Of a DNA stretch of 64,000 bases, positions 6,444-57,033 are shown piece by piece. Both the position numbers and the translations under genes were made by a program. Below the pieces are notes generated by a model. That model saw nothing but the letters and a program-made list of their open reading frames with translations. It made no database searches and was not told where the DNA came from. The DNA comes from Oculina patagonica (Eukaryota), in assembly GCF_052425735.1 (NCBI RefSeq), contig NC_135767.1, positions 14,570,001 through 14,634,000 of the forward strand, read 5' to 3'. Each line of letters opens with the position of its first letter. The stretch's first letter is position 1.

Positions 6444-7265
6444 ATGGAAACCTGGTTCTGGATTCTCGGCTGGTTTCTTTCTATCCTAACGGTAGCTGGA
6501 AATGGATTTGTTATCTTTATTGCTTGCAGAAAACGGCAGCTTCGAACCAAAACCAACGCGTTCGTCGTTTCATTAGCAGTCGCTGATTTCTGTATGGGGA
6601 TGAGCTCAGTTCCTTCACAGTTCTTCTGCGAGATGGCGACTGGGTGCAACTCGCAAGGACTTCTAGCTGACGGTATTGACTATATAAGGTGGCTCTTCGC
6701 GTACGCATCCGTGGGAAATTTGTGCAGCTTAGTACTGGATCGCTACATGGCCGTTGTGAAACCATTACAATACTTGACTTTTATGAAGCGCCGCCGTGTC
6801 ATTGAAATGATCTCTTTATCTTGGGCAATCCCAGCTACTTTCGTTGTGCTCGTGTCATCACTCTGGTTTAGTTTGAAAAAGCCTATTATTAATACTATTT
6901 CTGGTTGGGTGTGTATGTTTTTCGAGTTACTATCGTTTGTTGTCATAATCTTTTGCTTTGCATCTATGTTATTAGTTGTTTGCAAGCACGATCGAGCTAC
7001 CCGCACCCTAGCAAAACAGCTACGCTTTAACCATCACGTTTTGTTCAAAGTTCAGGATAAGTCTGCAGTTAAAATGATGGCAGTTGTTATTGCTTTATTT
7101 CTTGTGAGTTACGGAATTGCTTTGCGTTGTAGTTTTGTTTATATCCTCAGTGACAACACACCATGTAATGATAACCAATTTAAAGTGCCTCTTCTGGTTT
7201 TAAACTCCGCTGTAAACCCTTTAGCTTACGCTGTCTTTAAGAGAGACATTAAGAAGGAGTCTTAA
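6444..7265 (+). CDS. Class A (rhodopsin-like) orphan GPCR, subfamily A; helix-8 nonsense codon removes the last 13 codons
   Basis: GN (TM1), SLAVADF, DRY, NSAVNPLAY; METW start shared with paralogs; frame continues past TAA as RLIYSVVFKNCN to 7304. Confidence 0.9.
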   Translation: METWFWILGWFLSILTVAGNGFVIFIACRKRQLRTKTNAFVVSLAVADFCMGMSSVPSQFFCEMATGCNSQGLLADGIDYIRWLFAYASVGNLCSLVLDRYMAVVKPLQYLTFMKRRRVIEMISLSWAIPATFVVLVSSLWFSLKKPIINTISGWVCMFFELLSFVVIIFCFASMLLVVCKHDRATRTLAKQLRFNHHVLFKVQDKSAVKMMAVVIALFLVSYGIALRCSFVYILSDNTPCNDNQFKVPLLVLNSAVNPLAYAVFKRDIKKES

Positions 7266-7505
7266 AGACTGATCTATTCTGTGGTCTTTAAAAATTGTAA
7301 TTAACTTGAACAATCTTAAATTATTCTAGTAGAATTGTATGTCTCATTACTAATCATGTGGAACACCAAATGTAAAAAAAGAAAACATTTACGTAAACTA
7401 TATCGAACATTAATATCGTAAAAAATGTTGTGGTTATTCATCGTGGTAGAGTGCAATAATAAATTATTTTTCGTTTGTCTCACGACGTAGTCACGTGTGA
7501 TGGAG

Positions 7506-7549
7506 ATCGCGTCGTTTCGACTGCACACTGCTAGTCTTCATCAGGCGAT
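7506..7549 (-). ncRNA. Minimal type I hammerhead ribozyme motif of the Penelope terminal repeat (cleavage triplet reads GAC)
   Basis: Minus strand ATCGC-CTGATGA-AGACT-loop-AGTC-GAAAC-GAC-GCGAT; stem I ATCGC/GCGAT, stem II GACT/AGTC. Confidence 0.75.
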
Positions 7550-8677
7550 AAGGTCGACTGGTTGTGTGTGAACTTATAAAGCACGCTGCTGCGCTGTGAT
7601 TGGTTGGTTTTCAACAGCTTTGATTGGTGCATTTCGATCCTCGCTGTTTCTGTGTCCTGTTGTTCCCTCAGCGGTCCGCTGTCGTACAATTCTCCTGTTG
7701 TTGTGTTTTTTGATCGTGGGCATCCATGCTTCAGGAATTTCAATTCCATTATCCCTGTTGATATTATTAGGGTGAAGTCTTATGTGAATTGTGTCTTTGA
7801 CCCTGCGTTTGTACCAGTTTGGGTCACGATCAATAAACTTTACCTCGCTCCAAAGCGGGTAGTGTCCGGTGTTGTTGGTGTGTGCTGCAACGGCGGAGGT
7901 CTGGGTACGGGCGAGTCGGATGTCCCGGTCGTGTTCTTTGATCCTGTCTTGCATAGGTCTTCCCGTCTCACCGATGTAAACTTTGCCACATTCACAGGGA
8001 ATCCTGTAAACAACGCCATCTTGCTTAGTGGAATCAACAGCGTCTTTCGGCCGTACTAGGTGTGATCGTAGTGTGGTTTCCGACTTGAAAACAGCCCGCA
8101 CGCCTTGTTGTTGTAGGCAGCGGCGAAGTTGTTCGGAAAGACCTTTGACGTAGGGCAAAACCGCAGTGGATTTAAACTCGGTCGCGGGTTCAGCATTGGT
8201 TCTCGGTTTTCTGGTCTTGGTGATCTTCTGCAAGAAAGAACAAGGATAACCATCGGTGAGACGGGAAGACCTATGCAAGACAGAATCAAAGAACACGACC
8301 GGGACATCCGACTCGCCCGTACCCAGACCTCCGCCGTTGCAGAACACACCAATAACACCGGACACTACCCCCTTTGGAACGAGGTAAAGTTTATTGATCG
8401 TGACCCAAAATGGTACAAACGCAGGGTCAAAGAGGCAATTCACATAAGACTTCACCCTAATAATATCAACAGGGATAATGGAGTTGAAATTCCTGAAGCA
8501 TGGATGCCCACGATCAAAAAACACAACAACAGGAGAACTGTACGACAGCGGACCGCTGAGGGAACAACAGGACACAGAAACAGCGAGGATCGAAATGCAC
8601 CAATCACAGCTGTTGAAAACCAACCAATCACAGCGCAGCAGCGTGCTTTATAAGTTCACACACAACCAGTCGACCTT

Positions 8678-12435: not shown

Positions 12436-13296
12436 ATGGAAACCTGGTTCTGGATTCTCGGCTGGTTTCTTTCCATCCTGACGATGACTGGAAATGGATT
12501 TGTTATCTTCATTGTTTGCAGGAAAAGACAGCTTCGAACGAAAACCAACGCGTTCGTCGCTTCATTAGCAATAGCCGATTTCTGTGTGGGGATGAGCGCA
12601 GTGCCGCCACCGTTTTTGTGTAAGATGGCGAGTGGATGTGACTTAAAAGCGGTGTCTCAGTACAAAACGATAGCTACAGCCTTCACATGGGACGTGTTCG
12701 TGTACGCATCCGCCGTGAACTTGTGCAGTTTAGTACTGGATCGTTACATCGCCGTTGTGAAACCTTTAAGATACTTAACTTTTATGAGGCGACGCCGTGT
12801 CATTCTTATGATTTCCTTATCTTGGACAATCCCAGTTACTTTTACTGTGTTGGTAAGGTCACTCGAGTATAATTCAAAAGCCCTTTTTGTCATTAATATT
12901 GTCGGCTGGCTTTATACTGTTTTTGAGTTACTCTTGTGTGTTATTATAATCTTCTACGTTGCATCTATGTTACATATTGTTTGCAAGCACGGCCAATCTT
13001 CCCGCAGCCTAGCTAAACAGTTACGTTTTAACCATCGAGTTTTCTTTAAAACCCAGGAGAAGTCTGCGGTTAAGATGATGGCAGTTGTTGTTAGCTTGTT
13101 TCTTGTGTGTTTCGGACTTCTTTTGCACTGTAGTTTTGCGTCGTTATTTGGTTATCACAAAACATGTTTTAATTATATTCAATACAAATTCCTCCTTGTG
13201 GTTCTAAACTCCACCGTAAACCCTTTAGCTTACGCCGTCTTCAAGAGAGACATTAAGAGAGAATTGACAAGATTTATCTGTTCAGTGAGTCCGTAA
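12436..13296 (+). CDS. Class A orphan GPCR, subfamily B
   Basis: Intact 286-aa 7TM ORF with GN, SLAIADF, DRY, NPLAY. Confidence 0.92.
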   Translation: METWFWILGWFLSILTMTGNGFVIFIVCRKRQLRTKTNAFVASLAIADFCVGMSAVPPPFLCKMASGCDLKAVSQYKTIATAFTWDVFVYASAVNLCSLVLDRYIAVVKPLRYLTFMRRRRVILMISLSWTIPVTFTVLVRSLEYNSKALFVINIVGWLYTVFELLLCVIIIFYVASMLHIVCKHGQSSRSLAKQLRFNHRVFFKTQEKSAVKMMAVVVSLFLVCFGLLLHCSFASLFGYHKTCFNYIQYKFLLVVLNSTVNPLAYAVFKRDIKRELTRFICSVSP

Positions 13297-16985: not shown

Positions 16986-17816
16986 ATGGAAACCTGGTTC
17001 TGGATTCTCGGCTGGTTTCTTTCCATCCTGACGATGACTGGAAACGGAATTATCATCTTCATTGTTTGCAGAAAACGGCAGCTTCGCACCAAAACCAACG
17101 CGTTCGTCGTTTCATTAGCAGTAGCTGATTTCTGTGTGGGGATGATCTCATTTCCGACACGGTTCTTCTGCGAGGTGTTTGGTGAGTGCAACTGGCCGAT
17201 ATATTTCTTCAGGGGGCTGTTTGTGTACGCATCCGCCACAAACTTGTGCAGTTTAGTACTGGATCGCTACATGGCCGTTGCAAAACCTTTAACTTACTTG
17301 ACTTTTATGAAACGCCGCCGTGTTATTCAAATGATTTCATTATCTTGGGTAATCCCAGTTGTTTTTAGTGTTCTTGTTACATCACGAGTCTGGTTTAACT
17401 TACATACACCAGTTATTGATAATATTGTCGGCTGGCTCTATACAGTATTTGAGTTACTCTTGTGTGCCATTGTTATCTTTTGCTTCGCATCAATGGTACA
17501 TGTTGTTTGCAAGCACGCCCGATCAGCCCGTATATTAGCCAAACAGTTACGTTTTAATCATCACGCTTTGCTTAAAACTCAGGACACGTCCGCGGTTAAA
17601 ATGATGGCAATTGTGGTAGGTTTGTTTCTCTTGTGTTACGGAATAGCTTTGCGCTGTAACTTTGTGTACTATCTTGGCAACCAGACACCATGTAATGATC
17701 TCCGATACAAGGTACCTATTCAGGTTTTGAACTCAGCCGTTAATCCGTTAGCTTACGCTATCTTTAAAAGAGATATTAAGAAAGAGTTCAAAAGACTTCT
17801 GTGGAAGAGTAACTAA
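16986..17816 (+). CDS. Class A orphan GPCR, subfamily C (short ECL1)
   Basis: Intact 276-aa ORF with DRY and NSAVNPLAY. Confidence 0.92.
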   Translation: METWFWILGWFLSILTMTGNGIIIFIVCRKRQLRTKTNAFVVSLAVADFCVGMISFPTRFFCEVFGECNWPIYFFRGLFVYASATNLCSLVLDRYMAVAKPLTYLTFMKRRRVIQMISLSWVIPVVFSVLVTSRVWFNLHTPVIDNIVGWLYTVFELLLCAIVIFCFASMVHVVCKHARSARILAKQLRFNHHALLKTQDTSAVKMMAIVVGLFLLCYGIALRCNFVYYLGNQTPCNDLRYKVPIQVLNSAVNPLAYAIFKRDIKKEFKRLLWKSN

Positions 17817-20550
17817 CTTATTAAGTATCGATTTAACATGTCGCAAATTGTTTTACTTAGCTTATCTAGGGAACTAGCGAACCTCTTGAGTTACTCGTAT
17901 GTATTTCCCAACTTCATCGTCATATTTAACTATTAAAAAAATAGAAAGAAAGAAAATTTAATCAATTAGGCATCACAGGCAGCGCAAAGAGTACTATGTG
18001 TGGGAATCGAAGTTGTGGATAGTCTATTTTACACATATCAAGTGTGTACTTTGCGAAACAAAACTGACGAGATCTTCTCCCCTTACTATTCGGTGGCCTA
18101 GCTCACCTTATTTTTAACTAACTGATCGATACGAGTCATTTGTGGTTCGCACTTAAAACACTCACGTGGACCGTAGTATTGAGTTTTACAACGGGCAGAT
18201 GAGTGACTGTATAACAGCCTATGTAATCATGGTGCTCTTAGGTGTTCCAGAAAAACTTATTTGAAACTCCATAGTGCCTTTAAAAGAATGCAATGCTGTG
18301 TAATTCCATAATCGAAAGATAATATGGCATTAAATAAAATATTAAAATGAAATGACTGATCATGATGTTTACAGCTTCAGACGTAACAAACAAATATATT
18401 AGATTTCAAGCTTAAAATATTGCAGTCATTGATTGAAATGAGAAGAATTAACCTCTGTTTTCAACAATGTACATTAATTTGTGACACTAGAATTCAGACA
18501 AGAAATGCAAAGACAAATTACCCGAATTGAATGGCAGGCGTGAAAGTCAAAGTGGCTGCGTCTTGCATCACTCTTTAATTGGCCATAAAAGAAAACCATT
18601 AAAAAGATGTCATTTTTAAATCAAGATATGACACATGACATGACATGAAAACATGATCCGTTCATTGCCATAAGAGGGATCATTGCCTATCTCTTAATTG
18701 TTGGTATTGATATGGTTCAAACAGACCTCCAATTGGAAATATCGAAATGAATGAGGGGCGTAAAAGTGAATCAAGCGCTAATTTGTAGTTACGCCATAAC
18801 CTCTTGATTGGTTAGAAGCTCTGAAAACCCATTAAATGTCAAACTCGGCATGTCAAAGCGCCACTATAAATCTTTATCGCCTGACTGATGTTCTCAGCTA
18901 ATTTTATTTCAGTTAAAGACAACAAGGGCAAATGAGAAGCAACTTTTTTTTCAAAAATAACCATCTGCGACAAGAAATGCTTTTAAACGGTGTTTGGTCG
19001 CGAATTTTATAGTTAAAAAAGGAAACCTTGCTCGTATTAATGATATGAAGGATTTACCTCAGATTTAACTAACAGTGCGTGTAAAACAAAAAGAAACGCC
19101 GGCATGGAGTTATCTGACTTGGCCTGGAGGGCGTCATCGCTGTTTGATTGGTTAAAAGAAAAAACCCTACTAAGACAGTCATACTCTTCATGTCAGAACG
19201 TCACTCAAATGTCTTTATGGGGCGACTTATGTTTTTAGATTTTAAAGATACTTTACCATTTTTATTTGAATTAAAAAGAACGGAAGTTTTACCGAGCAAT
19301 GTGGATGTGAAAAATTTGCCATAGCTTTTAATATGTGATTCGAAAAATGAGCTAATATTTCTGCAAGCCCATTACTGATGACATCGACCGATATCACTTA
19401 ATTATTTACATACAAGTGGAGCGTGTGCGTAGTTAGATGATATTTTAATAAGTTAAGTTCGTAATAAGTAAAAATTAAACAATGCATTACAATTAGTTGA
19501 GACCAGATGGTTATAAAACAACATTTATATAAAAATGATAAAACGACGCCTCGACGCTCTTTTGAAATACGCGTTCCTGTTCATCATCAAGATAACTTGA
19601 AATCACTACAGTGTAGCTGAAAAATGGAATCCTGGTTCTGGATTCTCAGTTGGTCTCTTTCCATTCTGACGATGACTGGAAATGGATTTGTTATTTTTAC
19701 TGTTTGCAGGAAGCGAAAGCTTCGAACGAAAACCAACGCGTTCATCGTTTCATTAGCTGTGGCTGATATCTGTGTGGGCACGAGCTTGGTTCCGTCGCTG
19801 TTCTTCTGCGAGAAAAGTGGGTACAACTCACAAGGTGTATTTTACAAAGTGGCATTCTCCATATGTGAGTTGTTTACGTTCGAATCCGCTGTTAACTTGT
19901 GCAGTTTAGTACTGGATCGCTACATGGCTGTTGTGAAACCTTTTAAATACCTGACTTTTATAAAGCGCTGCCGTGTTGTTCAAACGATTTCCTTTTCTTA
20001 GACAACTTCTGCTACTTTTACTGTGTTTGTTAAGTCACGCTAGGATTTTTCCCGCCTTTTCCGGCCAGAAATCTGTCCACATTCCTTTTCGACGCCATAT
20101 TGGCCGAGTAACAACCCAATAAGGGGACTGGTGAGGAGCAGAAATGAAGGCCCTTTGAGGCTTCTGGGTAGCTCATAGCGCGGTAAAATTAGAATAAACA
20201 GACCAAGCTCCTCGAAAGCTTTTTTTGATACCAAACTTGCCATAGTTGTCGAACAAATTTTTTTCAAGTCTCGGGAAAGACAAGCATACTTGGCGTTATT
20301 TTGGGACCGATTTTGACTCTGTTTGTAAGATTAAACGTAAAGGAGAGCGAACAACAGCAAGGAAAGAAGCCATATATATTTTTGTAATGGTAAGGATTGT
20401 TCGATTCATTTTTAATTTCTGCTCTTTTTGATGAAATTAATTTTTTTCTGTCTACTTCCGACCGTGATCGGTTCGATGCGTTGCAAGGCACTCCTCATTC
20501 ATACAGACATGGGATGCCTGATAAAATGAATAAATGAGAAAATCACCACG

Positions 20551-22900
20551 ATGGGTCGAAGAAAAGGACAAAATCGTCGATTCCTAAATTGTAAAAGAAA
20601 AGCGCCGGAAAGAAAAAGTTAAAGCAGAAGTGAAGCGACTCCAGTAGGTAGGATAAACACCTAATTATATATTATATAATTATTTTACTTTTTTAGATTT
20701 TTTTTTTTAATCGTTTTATCCTAAAGGTTAACGGGTTGTGATCAAGAGCCAAGGTTAGCCAATATATTTTTAGTTCTCTTGAATTTTATTTTGCTACAAG
20801 TCCACTAAAGTGATTGGTTTTTTTTTTTTTTTATTGTTTTTTTTTGTCCTCTTTACAATTAGGGTATGAGAATAATTCGTTTATAAAAGGAAGGAATCCA
20901 ACCGACCGAAGTGAGAATCTGGCCCTGACCGCAGTTCCAGAAGGAGGTGTAAGAGACCCTTAAGGTTGCCCAAGCCCCATGGAGCCCTGACAACAGCTTC
21001 CTGCCTATGAAGGCATCATGCTGCCCTTAATACAAACTGTCAGTTCCAGAATTAACCAATATGATTAAGAAATGCCCCAAGTTTGTGAAGGTTACCAAGG
21101 GTTGTGAAAGATAAAAAAGTGAAGAGTGATGCAATTTATTAATTTTGTACAGGGGGAAGAAGTAAACAAAAATACATTCAATTAGTCATCCCTCTCAATG
21201 TGTGAATGAAACTGGCAAGGGGAGAAAGCACATAGAGTTTATGAAGAGCATTCAGTTCCTAGATTGCTTTCTTATCAGAAATTAATGGAAAGGGTTAACA
21301 AAATTGATATTGTGAATTAATGATGTGCAGAAATTCTTTTTATGGGCTTGATGAAGAAGACAAGGTAGATGGGAATTTAGGAGCCTTATTCAACTTTTTA
21401 AGAATGGCTAGTTTTTACCTTAAGGCAAACAAATACAGAGTAGATAAGCTTGACTGGTTTGGGGAGGGTGTGGTTCATTCAAAGTTGCTATTGGGGGAGA
21501 TGGAGCACATTTGGTAAGGATGACCAAGCTATAGCTTGGCTAGTCAGTTTTCTCAATTGTAGGAAGCGTTTGTAGCCCTGCAGAAAATTTTTTTTGTTTG
21601 GGGCAAATTGCTCTGAAGACTGTGAACCTCTTCGTAGATATGTAATTCTGCTGAGGGAGGAAATGACTGCCATTGAGGGGACTTCATACCCTTTAGAAGT
21701 AGACGGAAAACAGGTGAGTGTTTCCTCAGTTTGAACTACTTCCCAATGATATGAAATATGGCATTTCTGGGGGTGAACTTACCATTTCTGCATTGTATTT
21801 TTCTCCCTTTGCAAATGTCTGCAAGAGTGAAATTAACTATCTCCAGGGAACTTTTGGTCTTACACCTGACAAGAAATGGAAACCTTGGAAATACAGTGAT
21901 CGGTTGAAAGTAGCTGATGCAGTGGCCAAAAAGAAAGAGGAATTAGTTAATTCACCATTAAGGCCCAGTACAAAACGAGATAAGATCACTTCTCTTATTT
22001 CCCAGAAAAAATCCAGGCAAGAGTTTCCTCCCCTTGTTGGTAAATTCATTGACAAATCCAAAGCAGAGCCACTCCACCTGAAAAATAATGCTTGGCAGCA
22101 CTGGAATTTATCTTGTTGAAGTATGCACTGTATGTAGTAACCTTGGCAGTTGTCAGTCAATTCTTGATGTTCCTGCCAACAGTTGTTTTGGTAAGTATTA
22201 TCATAGTATACGATTTGTATGAAAGCAACAAGGTTGGCAAAAAAGGTGAGGAAATGGTTTGCTGATGGGAGAGATAAAAACAAAGATCTGGACTATAGAT
22301 TTACAGGTAAGGAGTCTCGCCTCTTTTGTCATTACTTTATGTCAATTATTCAAAGTCTTAGGACTGACTCAGACCAACAGAGTCATACATTTCAGTTGCA
22401 TGTTTTGCCTTCACAGCAATAAATCTCAGAGATGCAGTTTCCCTTTTTAGCAGGGTTTCTCTCTCAAATGAACAGGTTCAGAGCCTTCAGCAAGTTTGCT
22501 CTAACTACTTCAGAGCTACAGCACTCTTTATGACCAGTAAGCCAACCACCTGGACAATTGTCATGTTGTTCCCCTTCATGCCAAAATTCACCAAAAGCTG
22601 GGGAGGGTTGAAATACCATGGAGGGAAGAGAGGCCAAAATGTTACCTTGTAAATTTACTCATAACACCCAGTTTAGTAAAGGTGGAAAAGTAAAATGAGT
22701 TTCTATTTTTGTTAGGGAGAATGGTGGAAAATTTCATAAGGACACAGTGGGGTTTATGTACCTAAAAGGTGTAGTACACCAAATTTTGTATGTGGGGAAC
22801 CAAAAGGTTGCTAGCAAAATGATTTTTTGTGACCCACTTAGGGGCATATTTAAATGTAGTGGAAGGGAAAATAAGTATGCAGCAAAAGGAGTGTTAGTTA
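20551..22900 (+). pseudogene. Frameshifted DDE transposase, RAG1/Transib-like; 5' part probably intron-containing; boundaries approximate
   Basis: Motifs across frames: KVAIGGDGA (D at 21499), WLVSFLN, FGANCSE, ELLPNDMK (D at 21748), AEPLHLKNNAW, RFTGKESR, WTI(G)HVVPLH, NTMEGREAK (E at 22630); basic N-terminus MGRRKGQNRRF followed by GT..AG intron-like AT-rich blocks. Confidence 0.7.
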
Positions 22901-23638
22901 TTAAAATAAGGTTTTTTATATTTACGCCAGTTTCAGCAGTCAATATTTTTTTTAGTCAAAATTTTTTGACAATTAATAATAAGTAACAGAATAAGCCAAT
23001 TTTTTTATTTATTTTTAATATTTTTTTTGTTTAAAAAACTCCTTGAAGGCAGTTTCCATTTTATTAAAGGAATAAGAGAATATGCAGGCATGTAATAAGA
23101 GCCAGGCTGGGAGGAAAAAAATGAAATCAAGTTGCCCATTGGGCCAGTAATTACTAGCCAAATAGGTGTGCAATGTTCATGCCTTACAACTATATATTTA
23201 CTAGGTGAAGTTATCATGATCATATGATAGTGATAGACTATAAAAGTGGACAAAGCATGCTTGGATTTAAATTAATCCATGCTTTCAACTCATTTTTTCT
23301 CATTGCAGTTATAAGTTTTGAAATAATTTTTATTGAAATTATCACTAACAAGACTACTGAGGCAAATTTCATTGCATTTTAACTTCCCAAACTTACTTTC
23401 AAATTTACTTTCCCAGCCAATCGGAAATAGGTTTTTTTCCTACCCTGCCAAGAGTTGAAATTTTTTATTATTATTATAAGAACTGGAAATGAATGTATTA
23501 ATCAATTCTACAGAGGGATATAGTTGTACATTTCATACACTGATATTAAATGAAATAAACAATAGGGGGCTTTGCATCCCTTCAATGATGATATAGCAAA
23601 CAAATAAAGTTATTATTATGCTGACAACATGTGTAAAT

Positions 23639-24265
23639 TCATTGATGCTGGGGCCAACCATGCTCATTCCAAAATCCATAGTAAAAGTCAATGGTTATGA
23701 TCTCCTTGACATAGGAATACTTTATCCCAAATTGCTTTTCCTCGGAAATGATCGCTTCTACCCGCTTGTCGCCCTTTATCTTGCGAGCTAAGAAATTTTC
23801 TTTTACGAGCTGTTGGTCAGTTAGGTCGTTAAACACCTTTCTCACGCGCCTTTCTTTGGTAAAAGCAAATACACAGTTCTTTCTTGTCTTCACAGTGATA
23901 AGGCCAAAACTTGTACGGCTTACCAAACTCTCTAACACATTAAAGAGCTCCATTGGCAATCTATCTTCCACTATGACTTGCCATGGATGCTTTACAGCAC
24001 ATCTCGGGGTCATCCGACGCCGGAACTGTTTTATCCAGCACATCGCTTGCCTTCGGACAAGTGGAAACAAATCGCCAACAATGTGCTTCAAACCGATTTG
24101 GCCGCGGCTTAAATAGCGCTTCGAAACCGGTTCTGCCAAAATTTTCATTTCTTCAAAAGCATCCTTAATGTCTTTCTGGTCGATTCCTTGTGCTCTGAGT
24201 TCAGCTTCGGCAATTTCTAAAGCATTTCTTACAGTGTCTACAAATATGTTCATTTTGTCCGCCAT
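23639..24265 (-). CDS. Transposon-borne hypothetical protein, 208 aa, convergent with the transposase
   Basis: Uninterrupted ATG-initiated ORF with protein-like composition; start context CCAAGATGGCGG, 105 bp inside the right terminus. Confidence 0.7.
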   Translation of the reverse strand: MADKMNIFVDTVRNALEIAEAELRAQGIDQKDIKDAFEEMKILAEPVSKRYLSRGQIGLKHIVGDLFPLVRRQAMCWIKQFRRRMTPRCAVKHPWQVIVEDRLPMELFNVLESLVSRTSFGLITVKTRKNCVFAFTKERRVRKVFNDLTDQQLVKENFLARKIKGDKRVEAIISEEKQFGIKYSYVKEIITIDFYYGFWNEHGWPQHQ

Positions 24266-24947
24266 CTTGGTTCAGGTTTGTTTAGCTTTGGGGCTAGGCC
24301 GCTGACCCAAGTCACCCAACCCTTGCGCCTGCTGTCGTGGCCGGATTTGACCTATTTTTTTCCCAGCGTGGTCACGCGAGTATAGTTCAGAAAAGTATCC
24401 TATCATTAATATTGTCAACTGGTTTTATGTCGTTTTTGAGTTATTTTTATGTTTTGTTGTTACCTTGTGCTTCGCATCCATGTTAAGCATTGTTTGCAAG
24501 CACGATCGATCTGCCCGCGCCCTAGCCAAACAGTTACGTTTTAATCATCACGTTTTGTTTAAAACTCAGGAGAAGTCTGCAGTCAAAATGATGGCGGTTG
24601 TTGTATGTTTGTTTCTTGTGTGTTATGGCGTCTTCTTGCGTTGTAGTTTTGTTTATATTTTTAGTGATCACAAATCATGCAATAATCCCCAATACAGGGT
24701 ACCTATTCAGGTTTTGAAATCCGCATGTAACCCGTTAGCTTACGCCGTGTTCAAGAGAGACATTAAGAAAGAGTTTAAAAAGCTGATCTGTCATAAAAAA
24801 ATGAAAAAAAATCAGTAGCTTTCATAAAGAGATAATGTTTATTTGTCAATATGGCATGTTTGACTCCAATCTAATTAGCCTTAGTTATATCTGGTCTTGA
24901 ATGGGACTTATTAATATTCATGAAAAAATTGGGACCAGAGAAGGAAG

Positions 24948-26902: not shown

Positions 26903-27806
26903 TTAAAACAAGAGAACTTGACGTCTTTGCGCATCCCGACATAATGGTGAAGACTGTTTTATCCATTCATTGCTGGCGATACGTTTATCACTTGATGGTT
27001 CAAACAGACCTCCAATTACAAATATTGAGACGAATGTAGGGCGTAAATATCAATCAAGAGCTGTTGGGTAATTACGTTATCACTGCTTGATTGGTTAGAG
27101 GCTCAGTAAGCCGATAAAATTAATATGTCAAACTCTGCACGTCAAAACTATAATTTCAATTTAAAATGAGAAGTTACGAATGGGAAGTATATTTTTAAAG
27201 ACACTTAACTAAAAGCATCTGCGGCAAAATAGACTGTTTCAATAAATAGACAGCAAAATAGACCGTCTTTGGTGGCAGATTTTATAGTAGAAACAAGAAA
27301 AACTGCTGATATTGCTGATGTGAAGGATTTACCTCAGATTTAACTAAAAACGTGTATGACCTGAATAGAAACTTAGACAACAAGTCGCATAACTTGGAGG
27401 CCGGCATATCGAAAAAACGCTGCATAGAGCTTGGGTCATAACAGTTTACTTGGTTAGGAGAAAAGAAAACCACTGAAAAAGTCGTACTCGTCTGTCAAAA
27501 CGTCAATTGAAAATCTTTTTGAGGAGACTTATGTTTTTACCTTTAGACGATATCTACCAGTGTGGATGTGGAAAATTTGCAAGCGCAACTGATGACATCG
27601 CCTGATATCAATTATTTACACAACGTTAGGAACTTGTGCGTAGTTAGATGTCATTTGAAAAACGATGCATTATAATTAGTTGAGACCAGATGGTTTATAA
27701 AAACAACCTTTACACAAACAGGATAAAACAACACTTTTTCCGTCTTTCTTTCGCCTTCGGTGGTCATCAAGACAACTTGAACTCTTTTCTAAAGTGTAGC
27801 GGGAAA

Positions 27807-28652
27807 ATGAAAACATGGTTCTGGATTCTTGGCTGGTTTCTTTCCATCCTGACGATGACTGGAAATGGATTTGTTATCTTAATTGTTTGCAGGAAGCGGG
27901 AGCTTCGCACCAAAACCAACGCGTTCATCGTTTCATTAGCAGTAGCTGATTTCTGCGTGGGTATGAGCTCAGTTCCTTCGCTGTTCTTTTGCGAAATGGT
28001 GAGTGGGTGCAACACGCAACGTCTGCTAGCTGATGGTATTGACTTTATAAGGTGGCTATTCTTGTACCCATCCGCAGCGAACTTGTGCAGCTTAGTACTG
28101 GATCGCTACATCGCCGTCGTAAAACCTTTACGATACTTGATTTTTATGAAGCGCCGTCGTGTCATTCAAATGATTTCCTTATCTTGGGCAATCCCAGTTG
28201 CTTTTGTTGTGTTTGTATCATCACTGTGGCTTAGTATAAAAATACCTCTTATCTTTCATATTATCGGTTGGTTGTGTATGCTTCTAGAGCTACCCTTATG
28301 TGTTATTTTAATATTTTTCTTTGCCTCCATGTTGCATGTTATTTACAAGCACGCCCTATCTGTCCGTACCCTAGCTAAGCAGTTACGTTTTAACCATAGA
28401 GTTTTCGTTAAAGCTCAAGAGACGTCTGCAGTTAAAATGATGGCAGTTGTTATAGGTTTGTTTCTGCTGTGCTACGGATTGCTTTTGCGTTGTAGTTTTG
28501 TAATGATTCTTAGTGATTACAAGCCTTGCAATGATCTACAATATAAAGTACCTATTCTGCTTTTAAACTCTGCCGTTAACCCGATAGCTTACGCCGTCTT
28601 CAAGAGAGACATAAAGATGGAGTTTAAAAGACTGATAAATTTTGTGAAATAA
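27807..28652 (+). CDS. Class A orphan GPCR, subfamily A-like
   Basis: MKTWFWILGW start is homologous to the paralogs (the ORF extension to 27690 reads through the promoter module); DRY, NPIAY. Confidence 0.9.
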   Translation: MKTWFWILGWFLSILTMTGNGFVILIVCRKRELRTKTNAFIVSLAVADFCVGMSSVPSLFFCEMVSGCNTQRLLADGIDFIRWLFLYPSAANLCSLVLDRYIAVVKPLRYLIFMKRRRVIQMISLSWAIPVAFVVFVSSLWLSIKIPLIFHIIGWLCMLLELPLCVILIFFFASMLHVIYKHALSVRTLAKQLRFNHRVFVKAQETSAVKMMAVVIGLFLLCYGLLLRCSFVMILSDYKPCNDLQYKVPILLLNSAVNPIAYAVFKRDIKMEFKRLINFVK

Positions 28653-31868: not shown

Positions 31869-32738
31869 ATGGAAACCTGGTTCTGGATTCTCGGCTGGTT
31901 TCTTTCCATTTTGACAATGTCTGGAAATGGAATTGTTATCTTCATTATTTCCACGAAACGACATCTCCGAACGAAAACCAACGCGTTCGTCGTTTCATTA
32001 GCCGTGGTTGATTTTTGTGTGGGGATGAGCTTTGTTCCCTTGCAGTTCTTCTGCGATAAAGTGAGTAGGTGCGATTCCCAAGGAATGTCTTTCAAGGTGG
32101 TAATCTTATTGTCGGAGCTGTTCTTGTACGCTTCAGCGGTCAACTTGTGCAGTTTAGTACTGGATCGCTACATGGCCGTTGTGAAACCTTTAAAATACTT
32201 GACTTTTATGAAGCGACGCCGTGTTGTTCAAATGATTTCCTTGTCCTGGACAATTTCAGCTACTTTTATTGTATCTGTTAGATCACTCAAGGATAGTTCA
32301 AAAATACCTAAGCCTCATATTATTAACATCATCGGCTGGTGTTATGTAGTTTTTGAGTTACTCTTGTGTGCTATTTTAATGTTTTGTTTCACGTCCATGT
32401 TAATTGTTGTTTGTAAACACGGCCGATCTGCCCGCACATTAGCCAAGCAGTTACGTTTTAATCACCGAGTTCTCTTTAAAACTCAGGAAACGTCTGCAGT
32501 TAAAATGATGGCAGTTGTTGTGTGCTTGTTTCTTGTGTCCTACGGGCTTTTTTTGCGTTGTAGTTTAATGCATATTTTTGGTGATCGCATTGTGTGTAAC
32601 AGTGATATGCAATACAAAGTGCCTATTGTTGTTTTAAACTCAGCTGTAAACCCTTTTGCTTACGCCGTCTTCAAGAGAGACATTAAGAAGGAGTTTAAAA
32701 AACTGATCCATTCTGTGGCCTTAACATTTTGTAAGTAA
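31869..32738 (+). CDS. Class A orphan GPCR, subfamily B
   Basis: Intact 289-aa ORF with DRY and NPFAY. Confidence 0.92.
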   Translation: METWFWILGWFLSILTMSGNGIVIFIISTKRHLRTKTNAFVVSLAVVDFCVGMSFVPLQFFCDKVSRCDSQGMSFKVVILLSELFLYASAVNLCSLVLDRYMAVVKPLKYLTFMKRRRVVQMISLSWTISATFIVSVRSLKDSSKIPKPHIINIIGWCYVVFELLLCAILMFCFTSMLIVVCKHGRSARTLAKQLRFNHRVLFKTQETSAVKMMAVVVCLFLVSYGLFLRCSLMHIFGDRIVCNSDMQYKVPIVVLNSAVNPFAYAVFKRDIKKEFKKLIHSVALTFCK

Positions 32739-41435: not shown

Positions 41436-42296
41436 ATGGAAACCTGGTTTTGGATTCTTGGCTGGTTTATTTCCATCCTGACGATAACTGGAAATGGATT
41501 TACTGTCTTCATCGTATGCAGAAAACGACATCTTCGTACAAAGACCAATGCTTTCGTCGTTTCATTAGCAGTGGCTGATTTTTTTATGGGGATGAGCTCA
41601 GTTCCTTCACAATTTTTCTGCGAGATGGCGACTTGGTGCAACTCGCGAGGACTTCTAGCTGACGGCATTGACTATATAAGGTGGCTGTTCGCGTACGCAT
41701 CAGTGGGAAATTTATGCAGCTTAGTACTGGATCGCTACATGGCCGTGGTGAAACCATTACAATACTTGACTTTTATGAAGCGCCGCCGTGTCATTGAAAT
41801 GATAACTTTGTCTTGGGTAATACCAGTTACTTTTGTTGTGTCCGTATCATCACTGTGGTTTAGTTTGAAAAAGCCTATTATTAATACCATTTCTGGTTGG
41901 GTGTGTATGTTTTTCGAGTTACTGTCGTTTGTTGTCATAATCTTTTGCTTTGCATCTATGTTATTTGTTGTTTGCAAGCACGATCGAGCTACCCGGACCC
42001 TAGCAAAACAGCTACGTTTTAACCATCACGTTTTGGTCAAAGTTCAGGATAAGTCTGAAGTTAAAATGATGGCAGTTGTTATTATTTTATTTCTTGTGAG
42101 TTACGGAATTGCTTTGCGTTGTAGTTTTGTTTATATCCTCAGTGACAACACACCATGTAATGATAACCAATTTTAAGTGCCCCTTCTGGTTTTAAACTCC
42201 GCTGTAAACCCTTTAGCTTATGCTGTCTTCAAGAGAGACATTAAGAAGGCGTCTAAAAGACTGATCTATTCTGTGATCTTTAGAAATTGTAATTAA
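41436..42296 (+). pseudogene. Subfamily A GPCR with a premature TAA (42174-76) before TM7
   Basis: CAA TTT TAA GTG vs CAA TTT AAA GTG in paralogs; frame continues VPLLVLNSAVNPLAY..RNCN. Confidence 0.88.
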
Positions 42297-45299: not shown

Positions 45300-46109
45300 A
45301 TGGAAACCTGGTTCTGGATTCTCGGATGGTTTCTTTCCATTCTGACGATGACTGGAAACGGATTTGTTATCTTCATTGTTTGCAGAAAACGACAGCTTCG
45401 CACCAAAACCAATGCCTTTATCGTTTCATTAGCTGTGGCTGACTTCTGTGTGGGGCAAAACGCAGTCCCTTCGCTGTTCTTTTGTGAGATGGTGGGTCGC
45501 TGCCATTGGATATTAACTTATCTAAGGGGGCTGTTCGTGTACGCATCTGCCACAAACTTGTGTAGCCTAGTACTGGATCGCTACATCGCACTTGCGAAAC
45601 CTTTGTCATACTTGACTTTTTTGAAGCGCCGCCGAGTCTTGCAAATGATTTTCCTGTCATGGACAATCCCTGTTGCTTTCACTGTCTTTGTCGTGTCGTC
45701 GCTGTGGTTTTATCGCTCGAAAACACCAGTTATCTTTAAAATTCTTGGTTGGCTGTATTTAGCTTTTGAGGTGTTGTCATGTGCTATCGTAATCTTCTGT
45801 TTTACCGCTATGCTACGTGTGGTTTGCAACCACGCAAGATCTGCCCGTACGTTAGCCAAAAAGTTACGTTTTAATCATCGGGTTTTGCATAAAACTCAGG
45901 ACACGTCTGCGGTTAAAATGATGGCAATTGTTATTTGCATGTTTCTTGTATGCTATTGGATATTTTTGCGATGTAACTTTGTTTTAATTTTTATCGATCA
46001 AAAACAATGTAACGATCTTCAATACAAGGTACCTATTCTGGTTTTGAACTCCGCCGAAAACCCTTTAGCTTACGCCATCTTCAAGAGAGACATAAAGAGA
46101 GAGTTTTAA
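45300..46109 (+). CDS. Class A orphan GPCR, subfamily C; helix-8 nonsense codon and NSAENP variant
   Basis: 269-aa 7TM ORF; frame continues past TAA as RLIYLVMIKKCN. Confidence 0.85.
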   Translation: METWFWILGWFLSILTMTGNGFVIFIVCRKRQLRTKTNAFIVSLAVADFCVGQNAVPSLFFCEMVGRCHWILTYLRGLFVYASATNLCSLVLDRYIALAKPLSYLTFLKRRRVLQMIFLSWTIPVAFTVFVVSSLWFYRSKTPVIFKILGWLYLAFEVLSCAIVIFCFTAMLRVVCNHARSARTLAKKLRFNHRVLHKTQDTSAVKMMAIVICMFLVCYWIFLRCNFVLIFIDQKQCNDLQYKVPILVLNSAENPLAYAIFKRDIKREF

Positions 46110-47605: not shown

Positions 47606-48837
47606 ATTTTTGTAAGTCAACAGTATCGATCGATCCTTTGCACTTCGGCTTCGTTATCCGTTTTCCATGTGATAGTGCTCAATCTTTCAAGTTCACATGT
47701 ACACGAATGTGCCAATTGTATCTGAGGATTTTCTTACTGACAACGAGTTAACTTCTATCCCGGCGGTTTAAAGTACTAACCCAAACGGGAAATTTATTGA
47801 TACAAACGACACATTTATATCCTGAAAATCTTTTTGCTCGCAGTCCTGGCATTGCGTGTTCATCCGAAAGGACAATCATTACAAAATTTATTTCAATGAA
47901 ATCCTGTGTGAAAACGAGACATTTTTTTTTTCTTTCCAGACAAAACAAGACGTGGCCAATCTCCTCACCTTTTTCGTATAACGGCCCGGGTTGTAAATAA
48001 CGACTGACATTGACGTTAATTTGTTAAAATCACCAAAGAATGTCTATGAAGCGTCTTCAATAACAGGTTTTCCGACGGGTTGAGACATAAAGAAGAAGCA
48101 ATCAATCATGTTTACGTCATCACTGCTGTTTGGCCAAGAAGTTAAAAAAGATGTCAAACGTTAATTAACTCTGTATCTCAAAACGTCAGTCAATGTTTTT
48201 TTTATGAAGTGAGTGATGTTTTCATCTAAATATACCATTTAGTTATTTTCACTAAAGATATTTAAAGCTTTGCTATTTTTCTGGTACTTTTGGATAATTC
48301 TGTTTTCGTTTTCAACCATTTTAATTACAAAATTTGACCAGCAATGCAAAAACAATTAATTAAATGAAATTATATATTCGTCGATGACAGAAGAAAAAAT
48401 TGTTTGTTATCTTAATGTGACTTATAATATATTAAGTACATGGTGCATAAATTAGGCTAGGTTATAATATCGAACGTTATCTTTCTATTTTTAAATTTAA
48501 TAGATAGCAAGAAAAAGTTTTCGCAAGCCTCAACTGGAAAAATAAACGATTTTTTTAGTTTTGTCCAACTAACGGGAACGTACAATCAGAAGTATCGCTT
48601 CCTGCTCTAGGATCATTTTTTAAAAACATAAAATTGAAAAACTACAGGTACGTAGTTTGATGTTATAACGTGAGTAACGTTTGTAATAAAAACGGAAAGA
48701 TGTCAAAAGGACAACCAGGTGGTTTAAAACAGCCTTTATTAAAACACGATGAAATACTCCTTTTCGGTCTTTAAAATACCTGTTTTTGCTCATCATCAAA
48801 ATAAAAAGTTCTTTCTTTTTTGCAGTGTCGCTGGAAT

Positions 48838-49698
48838 ATGGAAACCTGGTTCTGGATTCTCGGCTGGTTTCTTTCCATCCTGACAATCACTGGAAATGGA
48901 TTCATCATCTTCATTGTATGCAGAAAACGGCAGCTTCGCACTAAAACCAACGCGTTCGTCGTTTCATTAGCAATAGCTGATTTCTTTATGGGGACGAGCG
49001 CGGTTCCTTCACTGTTCTTTTGTGAGATTGCGAATGGTTGCAACACGCAACGTCTGCTAGCTGACGGTATAGACTATATAAGGTGGCTGTTCATGTACGC
49101 ATCCACCGCGAACCTGTGTAGTTTAGTATTAGATCGCTTTATGGCTGTTGTGAAACCTTTACAGTACTTAACTTTTATGAAACGCCGCCGTGTCATTGAA
49201 ATGATCTCTTTATCTTGGGCAATCCCAGTTACCTTTGTCGTGTTCGTGTCATCACTTTGGCTTAGTTCAAAAAAGCCTACTATAAATACCATTTCTGGTT
49301 GGGTGTGTATGTTTTTTGAGTTTTTATCGTTTGGCGTTATAATCTTCTGCTTTGCATCTATGTTATTTGTTGTTTGCAAGCACGATCGATTCACCCGTAC
49401 TCTAGCCAAACAGCTACGCTTTAACCATCATGTTTTGATAAAAACTCAGGATAAGTCTGCAGTTAAAATGATGGCAGTTGTTATTGGTCTATTTCTTGTG
49501 AGCTACGGAATTGCTTTGCGTTGTAGTTTTGTTTATATCCTCAGTGATAATACACCATGTAATGATAACCAATTTAAAGTGCCCCTTTTGGTTTTTAACT
49601 CCGCTGTAAACCCTTTAGCTTATGCTGTCTTTAAGAGAGACATTAAGAAGGAGTTAAAAAGACTGATCTATTCTGTGACCTTTAAAAAGTGTAATTGA
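48838..49698 (+). CDS. Class A orphan GPCR, subfamily A (DRF variant)
   Basis: Intact ORF from METW; NSAVNPLAY; complete tail ending KKCN. Confidence 0.92.
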   Translation: METWFWILGWFLSILTITGNGFIIFIVCRKRQLRTKTNAFVVSLAIADFFMGTSAVPSLFFCEIANGCNTQRLLADGIDYIRWLFMYASTANLCSLVLDRFMAVVKPLQYLTFMKRRRVIEMISLSWAIPVTFVVFVSSLWLSSKKPTINTISGWVCMFFEFLSFGVIIFCFASMLFVVCKHDRFTRTLAKQLRFNHHVLIKTQDKSAVKMMAVVIGLFLVSYGIALRCSFVYILSDNTPCNDNQFKVPLLVFNSAVNPLAYAVFKRDIKKELKRLIYSVTFKKCN

Positions 49699-50104: not shown

Positions 50105-52540
50105 TGGCATGACTCGCTCTACCAGCAAATCGATGGCGATATGATACGCGAGGCGGCGTTACGAACAAAAGGCTCCGGTGGTCCCTCAGGCGTCGATGCA
50201 AACGGTTTCAAGCGAATTCTTGCTTGCAAATCATTCAAGAACTCGAGTGCAAACCTATGCGATGCCTTAGCTAAAATGGCAAGGAGGCTCAACACAGACT
50301 TTGTCGACCCTCGAACCATTGAGCCATTTCTAGCCAACAGGCTCATCCCTCTAGACAAAGGCGAAGGCGCGGTCCGCCCCATCGGTGTTGGTGAAGTCAT
50401 CAGGAGAGTGATTGGGAAATGTGTCATGAAGGTGACCAAACAAGATGTGATCGAGGCTAGTGGTTCGCTACAAGTCTGCGCAGGCCTCAAGAGTGGAAGC
50501 GAAGCCGCAGTCCACGCCATACACTCTATATTCGAAGCTGATGAGACGGATGCTGTACTCCTGATTGACGCCTCAAATGCATTCAATGCACTAAACAGAG
50601 CTGCTGCCCTCCACAATATTAGAGTACTCTGCCCACCTATTGCAACGTACGCTATCAATACGTATCGAGAACCAGCAAGATTATTCATAATCGGAGGGAA
50701 GGAGATCAAGTCTGCAGAGGGTACAACGCAAGGAGATCCTCTAGCGATGGGAATTTACGCCATCAGTCTACAACCTCTGATTACTCGTTTGGGGATTTCG
50801 AACGATTTGAAGCAGTGCTGGTTTGCCGATGACGCGAGTGGTGCAGGTTCATTGGAAGATATCAAGCGATGGTGGGATGTGCTGACTGAGGCAGGACCTG
50901 ATTTGGGGTATTACCCTAACGCCAAAAAGTGCTGGCTTATTACGAAACCCAACAAGAAGGACCATGCTAAAGCTATCTTCGAGGGGACTGCGATAAACAT
51001 CTCTACGCAGGGACAAAAACATCTAGGCGCCGCTCTAGGCTCTCGAGCTTATCTCGAAGAGTATGTCGATGGAAAGGTTGAGGAGTGGGTGAGCCAGGTG
51101 GTAAAGCTAGCCGAGTATGCCACATCAAACCCACAGGCGTGCTATGCGGCATTTACCTTCGGACTACGCCACCGCTGGACATATTTTCTCAGAACACTTC
51201 CTGATATAGAAGATCTATTAGAGCCCCTGGAGCGTGCTATTGCAGATTTACTAATACCATCAATCACTGATCACCACTGCACAAAAGAAGAGAGGGACCT
51301 AGTGGCACTTCCAGTGCGGCTAGGGGGGCTTGGACTTATTAATCCAAGCCAGGATGCAGCTTCCCAATTCAAGGTGTCAACCAAGATCACAGCGCCCCTA
51401 GTCGAGAAAATAATCGCACAGGATCATGAAACACCGGCTGATACTGCTGTCAAGACACTACAGCAGTGCGTGCGAAGAGAAACCAACGAAGCGCTTCAGA
51501 CTAGGCTTGGCAATGTCAGGGAGTCTCTACCTCAGAAGACACAACGAGCCATTGATCTCGCAACCGAGAAAGGTGCTTCTAACTGGCTCACGGTCCTCCC
51601 ATTAAAGGACATGGGCTACAACCTGAATAAAGGCGAGTTCCGAGATGCTGTAAAGCTCAGGTACGACTGGGAAATTGACGACAAGCCGACAGTGTGCGTG
51701 TGCGGTGACGCCTTTACAATCGATCATGCAATGATTTGTAGGAGAGGCGGATTCATAATTCAGCGCCATAATGAACTCCGTGACCTCGAGGCTGACTTGC
51801 TTAAGATGGTCTGTAATGATGTCGAAATAAAGCCCGTCCTTCAAGAACTGACTGGAGAGAGGCTACCAAGCGGCGCTAACACAACGCCAGATGCTCGCCT
51901 AGATATACATGCCCGGGGGTTTTGGGAGAAGCAGAGATCCGCGTTCTTTGATGTGAGGGTGTGTCACCCCAACGCGGATTCCTACATTGACCAAACCCCC
52001 AAGCAGATATACCGTAACCATGAGAATGAGAAGAAGAGGGCTTACGCAGACAGGGTTCTTCAAGTAGAACAGGGAACTTTCACTCCATTGGTGTTTACAT
52101 CCACCGGAGGAATGGGCGAGGAGTGCAAGAGGTATCACAGTAGGCTTGCAGAACTAATCGCCGCAAAGAAAGGGGAGGATTACGCAACAACGGTGTCTTG
52201 GATCAGATCAAAAGTCTCATTTGCGATCCTCCGATCCGCCTTAATCTGCCTAAGGGGATCAAGAACTGTAAAGAGAAACAGGAACATTGACATTTATGAT
52301 ATGGACTTTCAAGTAGAGAATTCTCGTACTGCAATTTAGATCGAATATTTTTTTTTTTTAATATATAGTTCTTCTTTTATTATTGCTCTCGAAGTCGCTT
52401 TTACTATTTTTCTACATTTTTAAAGACACTGTTTTTATTATTATGTAAATAATATGTTTATATATAAAGTTCTTATTCGAATAGTCAAATCATTGTAATT
52501 CTTTTAGAAATTGGTTAATAAAGTGTTTATAATAATTTAA
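50105..52540 (+). mobile_element. 5'-truncated CRE-clade non-LTR retrotransposon
   Basis: RT + CCHC + restriction-like endonuclease ORF; 3' UTR with AATAAA near 52517; flanked by TTTTT(ATT)nAA on both sides. Confidence 0.88.
50141..52339 (+). CDS. Reverse transcriptase with zinc knuckle and restriction-like endonuclease (N-terminally truncated)
   Basis: [70 protein letters not shown]. Confidence 0.93.
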
Positions 52541-56169: not shown

Positions 56170-57033
56170 CTACTTGCATTTTTTTAAAATCACAAAATAG
56201 ATCAGTCTTTTACACTCTTTCTTTATGTCTCTCTTGAAGATGGCGTAAGCTAAAGGGTTGACAGCTGAGTTTAAAAGTACAATGGGCGTTTTATAATGAC
56301 GGTCATTACATGATTTCTGATTATGACTAGAAATGTGAACAAAAGAACAACGGAGTAGAAGTCCGTAACAAACAAGAAACAAGAATACAACAACTGCCAT
56401 CATTTTTACCGCAGATTTCCCACGAGGTCTAAAGAACACTTGGTGGTTGAAACGTAACTGTTTGGCTAATGTGCGGGCGGATTGATCGTGCTTGCAAACA
56501 ACAATTAACATGGATGTAAAGCAGAAGATTACAATAACACACAAGAGTAACTCAAAAGCTACATATAACCAGCCGTGAATATTCATGTCAAAAAGTGTTT
56601 TGGAAATATACTTTAGTGAGGATACAAGCACAGTAAATGTAATTGCAAAGGCCCAAGAGAAGAAAATCATTTGAATCACGCGGCGGCGTTTCATAAAAGT
56701 TAAGTATGTTAAAGGTCTCACAACGGCGATGTAGCGATCAAGTACTAAACTGCACAAGTTAATAGCAGATGCGTACGTAACCAACTCCAGCATAAAGGTT
56801 ATCACTTTGTAAAGTACACTCTTTAAGTTACATCCACTCCCCATGTTGCAGGAGAACAATAAAGGGACCAAGCTCATCCCAACACAGAAATCAGCCACTG
56901 CTAATGAAACGACGAACGCGTTAGTTTTGGTGCGAAGGAGACGATTTCTGCACACGATGAAAATAACAAATCCATTATCAGCCATCGTCAGGATGGAAAG
57001 AAACAAGCCAAGAATCCAGAACCAGGTTTCCAT
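56170..57033 (-). CDS. Class A orphan GPCR, subfamily B, inverted relative to the array (TM1 GN>DN)
   Basis: Intact 287-aa ORF with DRY and NSAVNPLAY. Confidence 0.92.
   Translation of the reverse strand: METWFWILGLFLSILTMADNGFVIFIVCRNRLLRTKTNAFVVSLAVADFCVGMSLVPLLFSCNMGSGCNLKSVLYKVITFMLELVTYASAINLCSLVLDRYIAVVRPLTYLTFMKRRRVIQMIFFSWAFAITFTVLVSSLKYISKTLFDMNIHGWLYVAFELLLCVIVIFCFTSMLIVVCKHDQSARTLAKQLRFNHQVFFRPRGKSAVKMMAVVVFLFLVCYGLLLRCSFVHISSHNQKSCNDRHYKTPIVLLNSAVNPLAYAIFKRDIKKECKRLIYFVILKKCK

Follow-up and report, generated by a model that had tools for sequence, protein, structure and literature searches.

The 64,000-nt stretch of Oculina patagonica DNA studied here (NC_135767.1, positions 14,570,001 to 14,634,000; "the window") carries a 4335-bp element at window positions 20036-24370 that splits a G protein-coupled receptor (GPCR) gene. 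The element is probably an ancient cut-and-paste DNA transposon of two genes that can no longer move. It would belong to the CMCT (CACTA/EnSpm, Mirage, Chapaev, and Transib) assemblage and lie outside its RAGL/Transib branch, with a small DUF8238 protein as the putative obligate accessory of its transposase. An original prediction, made from the letters of the window, had suggested an uncharacterized two-component branch of the RAG/Transib/CMC group. The fold of the transposase, the non-kelch partner, and the conserved gene pair all support that suggestion.

Limits, ends, and target sites

The element opens with CACGCTAGGA... and closes with ...TCCCAGCGTG, so that its ends read CACGCT...AGCGTG. 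Homology with L001, a copy in another coral assembly (ENA ERZ25067872), starts at 20036 and stops at 24370 exactly, and the flanks of the two copies are unrelated. Homology with L004 stops at the matching terminal sequences, while that with L025-L028 ends at 24370, apart from 2 bases of flank that happen to coincide. The element boundaries are thus homology breakpoints against three other copies. Because these breakpoints coincide, the limits do not depend on the short inverted repeat alone. A reading with TAGG...GTG ends and a 7-bp target-site duplication (TSD; GTCACGC) was also considered and rejected, as L001, L004, and L025 become homologous to the window only from CACGCT onward and have different flanks.

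A precise interruption of the GPCR had been predicted, and the two halves of the host gene bear this out. The 5' half is a rhodopsin-type pseudogene (19624..20035, plus strand; Pfam 7tm_1, E 4.6e-20, profile positions 1-107), and the 3' half (24371..24818, plus strand) covers 7tm_1 profile positions 167-260. Aligned to the paralog at 12436-13296, the left piece runs up to residue 141 and the right piece resumes, in frame, at residue 142. Since the halves abut at adjacent residues, we conclude that the insertion was precise. The interrupted gene is intronless and carries a single stop codon, TGG>TAG, at 19999-20001.

At each end, 14 or 15 nt of spacer separate CACGCTRGGA from a following TCCGGCCA. 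The left terminal signal (20036..20067, plus strand), which starts at the L001 breakpoint, comprises CACGCTAGGA, a 14-nt spacer, and TCCGGCCA. Read on the minus strand, the right signal (24338..24370) comprises CACGCTGGGA, a 15-nt spacer, and TCCGGCCA, and it is bounded by the breakpoints with L001, L004, and L025-L028. When the window was searched for the composite pattern, it occurred twice, both times at an element end; 0 occurrences are expected, and none appeared in 100 shuffles. The same two terminal boxes recur in L001, and the variants TTGGCCA or GCGGCCA are found in L004, L005-7, L002, and L014. L001 shares the 14- and 15-nt spacers of the window copy, and other coral subfamilies have spacers of 14-17 nt. 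All copies end in CACGCY...RGCGTG. We found no second copy of the element within the window, nor any subterminal repeat families inside the element.

The apparent TSD had been put at only 2 bp. This is correct for the window copy, in which GT stands at 20034-20035 and again at 24371-24372, but it is not the habit of the family. We tabulated nine copies. The TSD is 2 bp in the window copy and L004 (AT); 3 bp in L001 (CGG), L006 (TAT), L007 (CTA), L017 (TGG), and the Nematostella copy L023 (TAA); and 4 bp in L005 (ATGG). None is readable in L002. Five of the nine copies therefore have the usual 3 bp, the range is 2-4 bp, and no copy has 5 bp.

The transposase and its placement

Gene 1 occupies the left part of the element, on the plus strand. 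A deletion-damaged remnant of exon 1 (20551..20645) encodes a basic N-terminus (MGRRKGQNRRF...) and is followed by a GTAGGA donor. It matches exon 1 of L001 (MVRRKGQNRRFPLN...KRLQSK, then gtagga) and the N-terminus of the homolog P0055, and its splice sites are putative. The main exon (20888..22895, plus strand) is non-functional; we located it by tblastn and by nucleotide alignment to L001:8408-10633. In L001 the main exon is intact, encodes 740 amino acids (aa), and is 82% identical in DNA to the window copy, and this natural intact relative served as our reference in place of a consensus of copies. In full-length homologs such as P0055 and P0081, two short upstream exons supply the basic N-terminus (MPPRKGQKNRFP...) together with a coiled coil. 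Full-length homologs start with MPPKGK... or MPPRKGQKNRFP..., with the coiled coil next; they give only weak coiled-coil-type Pfam matches and show no Cys/His pattern or Chapa zinc finger at the N-terminus. An intact gene 1 would be expected to have three exons and to encode a transposase of ~740-800 aa, in which a short coiled coil accompanies the basic N-terminus.

Motifs in the order of the RAG1 core had been picked out of the damaged frames. All six (GGDG, PNDMK, PLH, FTGKESR, HVVPLH, and MEGREAK) are present in the stitched frames, and all fall on invariant or near-invariant columns of an alignment of 37 family members. The main exon of the window copy still shows GGDG (first Asp, ~21497), PNDMK (second Asp, ~21745), and MEGREAK (Glu, ~22620). 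The corresponding residues, D251, D336, and E636, are invariant in the 37 sequences. AlphaFold2, run on this alignment, returned a confident model (pLDDT 89.1, pTM 0.82) in which D251 ends strand beta1, D336 lies just after beta4, and E636 sits in a helix. Motif order and secondary structure suggest that the three residues are equivalent to RAG1 D600, D708, and E962. The zinc site is another matter. At the position of RAG1 C727-x-x-C730 the window had been noted to read YFSPF, and this loss is family-wide: 37/37 sequences read YFS[PST]F[AGS], with S355 and F357 invariant. A near-invariant C-x-C...C-x-x-C cluster is found at the C-terminus of the transposase.

A structural comparison had been proposed along with the original prediction, and we made it with this model of the intact relative. 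Foldseek against the PDB placed 43 RAG1 chains on top (best E 3.3e-14), then HzTransib (3.9e-7) and BbRAGL (5.5e-7); the P element transposase ranked below these (1.2e-2). Among the Swiss-Prot models of the AlphaFold database, the fold matched RAG1 of eight vertebrates (3e-14 to 4e-13). The model thus points to a transposase of RAG1-core architecture, with DDBD, pre-RNase H, RNase H, Zn-binding, and C-terminal domains. As we picture it, the core would comprise a DDBD-like domain, a pre-RNase H domain, an RNase H domain with the D-D-E triad, a long helical insertion, and a C-terminal domain, with a Cys4 cluster last.

Perhaps the element is a true member of the RAGL/Transib lineage, a direct cousin of ProtoRAG in which RAG2L has been replaced by another partner? 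The best solved structural matches are indeed RAG1, BbRAG1L, and HzTransib. Language-model features, too, rank Transib-like clusters (0.95) and RAG1 (within 0.95-0.89) among the nearest named ones, behind a DUF1280 cluster (0.97), with no Transposase_21 cluster listed. The convergent two-gene layout and the bipartite terminal signal, with two boxes at each terminus, are ProtoRAG-like as well. However, structure-based identity to RAG1 and BbRAG1L is only 10-13%, compared with the ~26% that RAG1L shares with Transib (PMC9435367), and Pfam gives no RAG1 match. RAGL elements (BbRAGL, PDB 6b40) make 5-bp TSDs, whereas those of this family are 2-4 bp. Their spacers are unequal, of the 12/23 type, and here they are 14 and 15 nt, one nucleotide apart. 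Their partner is a kelch propeller, and here it is a 208-aa DUF8238 protein. The C2H2 zinc site (RAG1 C727, C730, H937, H942) is not conserved in the family, its C2 half being lost. Transib (HzTransib, PDB 6pqx, 6pqn) has one gene, makes 5-bp TSDs, and keeps the C(2)C motif, in contrast to the two genes, the mostly 3-bp TSDs, and the absence of C(2)C seen here. Moreover, the Transposase_21 clusters fit the model equally well, and the top rank of RAG1 is partly a library effect because the PDB holds no CACTA, Mirage, or Chapaev structure. Hence, the predicted likeness to ProtoRAG extends to layout and fold and fails for TSD length, spacers, kelch partner, Pfam RAG1 match, and zinc ligands. Descent from within the RAGL/Transib lineage seems to us very improbable. 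We conclude that this is not a RAGL or Transib element: every feature tested that defines those elements, the fold excepted, failed.

The CMCT clade has been characterized by 5'-CA..TG-3' termini, TSDs of 2-5 bp, and C(2)C and H(3-4)H motifs, both of which Transib keeps, and an HHpred link to RAG1 has been reported for its ESTA lineage (Kojima 2025, PMC12730594). Our family agrees in its termini and TSD range, and its DDE transposase has a RAG1-like fold, but it lacks C(2)C. Its resemblance to CMC elements lies in the CAC...GTG termini, in TSDs that are mostly 3 bp as in EnSpm, and in a transposase whose second D is separated from the E by a very long insertion. In addition, an ESM-Atlas shape search gave Transposase_21 (PF02992) clusters template-modeling (TM) scores, by query, of 0.56-0.57, so that they superpose on the family model as well as RAG1 clusters do (0.57-0.58). 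Plant CACTA elements also employ a second element-encoded protein, but there TnpA is an alternative splice product, whereas the partner here is a separate convergent gene. The family further differs from EnSpm/CACTA in having no PF02992 match, termini that read CACGC and not CACTA, and no subterminal repeat arrays. Chapaev and Chapaev3 carry an N-terminal Chapa zinc-finger domain (PMC4411706; bioRxiv 10.64898/2026.01.24.700457), unlike the basic N-terminus and coiled coil found here. Because termini, TSD range, and fold fit CMCT while C(2)C, the Chapa finger, the Transposase_21 signature, and subterminal repeats are absent, we place the family as a separate CMCT lineage, closest to EnSpm by its insertion marks.

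Might the family nevertheless already be catalogued in Repbase or Dfam, most likely as an EnSpm/CACTA or Chapaev family of Nematostella, Hydra, or Acropora, so that only the structural description would be new? Its 3-bp TSDs and CAC...GTG ends do match the Repbase criteria for EnSpm (PMC12730594), the clean copy L023 comes from Nematostella vectensis, whose repeats were heavily curated, and Pfam already lists the partner as DUF8238. Against this, DUF8238 was not mentioned in the literature searched, the Transposase_21 and RAG1 Pfam models touch 0/37 members, and the full-length homologs lack the Chapa finger. We regard prior cataloguing as a real possibility, though the less probable case. The family is apparently unstudied.

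Several observations weigh against placing the family in CMCT or against other parts of our explanation. At the level of sequence, no link to any named transposase family was found by Pfam or by PDB profile search: the 37 members matched no Pfam family even at E<=10, and the family profile hit no chain among all PDB sequences, RAG1, RAG1L, and Transib included. Transib and RAG1 clusters, and not Transposase_21, are among the nearest named by language-model features. The C(2)C motif that Kojima gives for all CMCT lineages is replaced by S355-x-x-A358, and although the H-x4-H spacing is kept, H615 alone is invariant, H610 being H, N, K, or Y. The TSDs vary in length, and only nine copies were tabulated. 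For DUF8238, AlphaFold2 gave a low-confidence model (pLDDT 55.6) that shows three helices at the N-terminus and a small alpha/beta part. Finally, with no CMC structure solved, it is TSD length and the equal TM-scores that put the family nearer to CMC than to Transib.

Two further searches were negative. Pfam found no transposase family in any of the window's open reading frame (ORF) pieces, and phmmer and hmmsearch with a 133-aa piece gave no meaningful match among PDB sequences.

Cnidarians commonly carry the family, which also occurs in a nemertean. A word-limited search recovered 246 proteins. When 1.84 billion representatives were searched with a profile, 3184 matched at E<=1e-3, of which 663 reached E<=1e-30. 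The members with a named source are from Acropora, Porites, Exaiptasia, Nematostella, Actinia, Dendronephthya, and the nemertean Lineus longissimus; viral relatives were sought without a match. A transposase homolog with 43% identity to the family lies at 3001-5133 of contig CBDAUV010000034.1 (L029), which is assigned to an 'Anaerolineae bacterium' metagenome-assembled genome. GC content here is 40.6%, and 8 kb of the locus contain only four ORFs of >=90 aa. We rejected gene transfer to a bacterium, as the GC content and near-absence of ORFs look like those of a mis-binned eukaryotic contig.

The partner gene and the decay of this copy

Gene 2, or ORF2, faces the transposase tail to tail, as predicted. 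It lies at 23639..24265 on the minus strand and encodes 208 aa with no frameshift or stop; an A+T-rich, poorly conserved spacer (22896..23638; 62-71% identity to L001) separates the two 3' ends. The protein belongs to Pfam DUF8238 (PF26709), and its ratio of nonsynonymous to synonymous substitution (dN/dS) against relatives is 0.08-0.13. The prediction that the partner is not kelch-like also holds: only DUF8238 was matched, Pfam gave no kelch match, and family partners, at 205-250 aa, are too short for a six-blade propeller. Neither Pfam nor a DUF8238 profile run against PDB sequences revealed another domain or a PDB relative, and an ESM-Atlas feature search with DUF8238 returned only noise (scores up to 0.60).

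A convergent second ORF is present in all complete copies examined. It lies inside the terminal inverted repeats (TIRs) of the close coral copies L001, L004, and L005-L007; in L017, whose subfamily has a transposase ~42% identical; in Nematostella L023 (9595-10062, minus strand, by tblastn); and in Lineus longissimus L024. Across this range DUF8238 retains only ~9 invariant positions, which include a C-terminal G-x-W-N...H motif, and it has no conserved Cys residues. Wherever dS could be measured, pairwise dN/dS is 0.08-0.27.

The decay of the window copy has an unusual pattern. Against the L001 coding sequence, the window transposase shows 64-73 gap events, depending on gap penalties, of which 66 are frameshifting; all but two are deletions of 1-8 nt in the window. 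By comparison, L004 has 1 such event and L002, though far more diverged, has 5; the deletions are therefore peculiar to the window lineage. Substitutions tell a different story, one of purifying selection. On the window branch dN is 0.050, dS is 0.307, and dN/dS is 0.16, the same ratio as on the branch of intact L001, and neither gap-free codon set (630 and 620 codons) contains a stop in the ancestral frame. Ordinary neutral decay does not fit, since it predicts raised dN/dS and stops, and neither is seen. Single-base deletions are no commoner in homopolymers than elsewhere (10/33). Events are dense at 20286-21786 and 22536-23536, sparse at 21786-22536, and missing between 23786 and the right end, and one 15-nt deletion lies near the 3' end of ORF2. 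In the 627 nt of ORF2 we would expect ~19 events at the average density and ~5 at the lowest regional density (P ~0.005), whereas no frameshift is observed. ORF2 dN/dS on the window-specific branch, calculated from pairwise distances, is ~0.07. A local, unpolished stretch of assembly, a burst of small deletions, and selection on ORF2 (or its conversion) after the death of the transposase are all candidate explanations. Global assembly error was rejected, given that the flanking GPCR and nine paralogous GPCR ORFs are free of frameshifts.

Other loci also carry the partner gene. Six long Tara Pacific scaffolds (L009-L014) encode an identical 207-aa DUF8238 protein beside a BAR/SH3 gene, and two short Logan contigs in the L009-L016 set encode the same protein. 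In L009 the DUF8238 gene lies at 7001-7624, and the adjoining transposase remnant is truncated and stop-ridden. L009-L016 may represent a copy that became fixed and in which only the partner gene has survived.

Is ORF2 then a captured or domesticated host gene, kept by selection at the level of the host and without a part in transposition? It is intact beside a transposase with ~65 deletions and has a low dN/dS on the window branch; L003 and L009-L016 likewise keep ORF2 after losing most of the transposase, in L009-L014 next to the BAR/SH3 gene. Yet the same convergent gene is found inside TIRs at 25-30% protein identity in Scleractinia, Actiniaria, and Nemertea. Its presence beside the transposase across three groups is the signature of a co-inherited element gene. 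Furthermore, the searches that led to L003 and L009-L016 used intact ORF2 proteins as queries, and this introduces an ascertainment bias. A host origin for ORF2 thus appears improbable, while secondary domestication of individual copies is compatible with an element gene.

Co-inheritance across phyla argues that DUF8238 is an element gene needed for transposition, and by analogy with known two-protein systems it may be an obligate accessory subunit. We propose that the transposase recognizes the CACGCYRG termini and, in coral subfamilies, probably also the second GGCCA box ~25 nt inside the end. It would pair both ends and cut next to CAC through its DDE site, perhaps by nicking first and then forming a hairpin on the flank, by analogy with RAG1 and Transib. 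Staggered integration would follow, usually leaving a 3-bp duplication. DUF8238 might contribute DNA binding, synapsis, or nuclear import. Its role would parallel that of RAG2 for RAG1L, or of TnpA for CACTA TnpD, with no homology to either.

The rest of the window and the meaning of the family

The interrupted GPCR stands in a tandem array of intronless ORFs (12436-13296, 16986-17816, 27690-28652, 31869-32738, 41436-42176, 45300-46109, 48820-49698, and 56170-57033). At the protein level, six of them, those starting at 12436, 16986, 27690, 31869, 41436, and 45300, share 62-72% identity with the interrupted gene, and Pfam confirmed 7tm_1 for those at 27690 and 56170. An intact 732-aa ORF at 50141-52339 (plus strand) has a reverse-transcriptase domain (RVT_1, E 5.5e-7) and is probably a retroelement ORF. 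A 388-aa ORF at 61745-62911 (minus strand) has both fucosyltransferase (GT10) domains, and positions 2023-2167 are a run of 145 N.

The dependence of RAG1 on RAG2, and whether the convergent two-gene layout is ancestral or acquired, are questions in the origin of V(D)J recombination. The family described here offers a natural comparison: from cnidarians to nemerteans, it combines the RAG1 fold and the tail-to-tail layout with a different partner and no C2H2 zinc site. It also fills an annotation gap, as thousands of unannotated proteins in assemblies of cnidarians and other marine invertebrates belong to it.

Could RAG1-fold transposases be two-subunit enzymes in general? On that broader reading, the family would be an independent, animal-wide case with the unrelated DUF8238 in the role of RAG2, and in the window the partner would have outlived its transposase under purifying selection. 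We hold this to be doubtful. If the partner did outlive the transposase, then either DUF8238 acts preferentially in cis on non-autonomous copies or domestication has begun in this coral. Natural intact copies (L001, L006/L007, and L017) make the dependence on DUF8238 directly testable. If DUF8238 is required for cleavage or end pairing, dependence on an accessory subunit would be recurrent or ancient in this fold and not a peculiarity of RAG.

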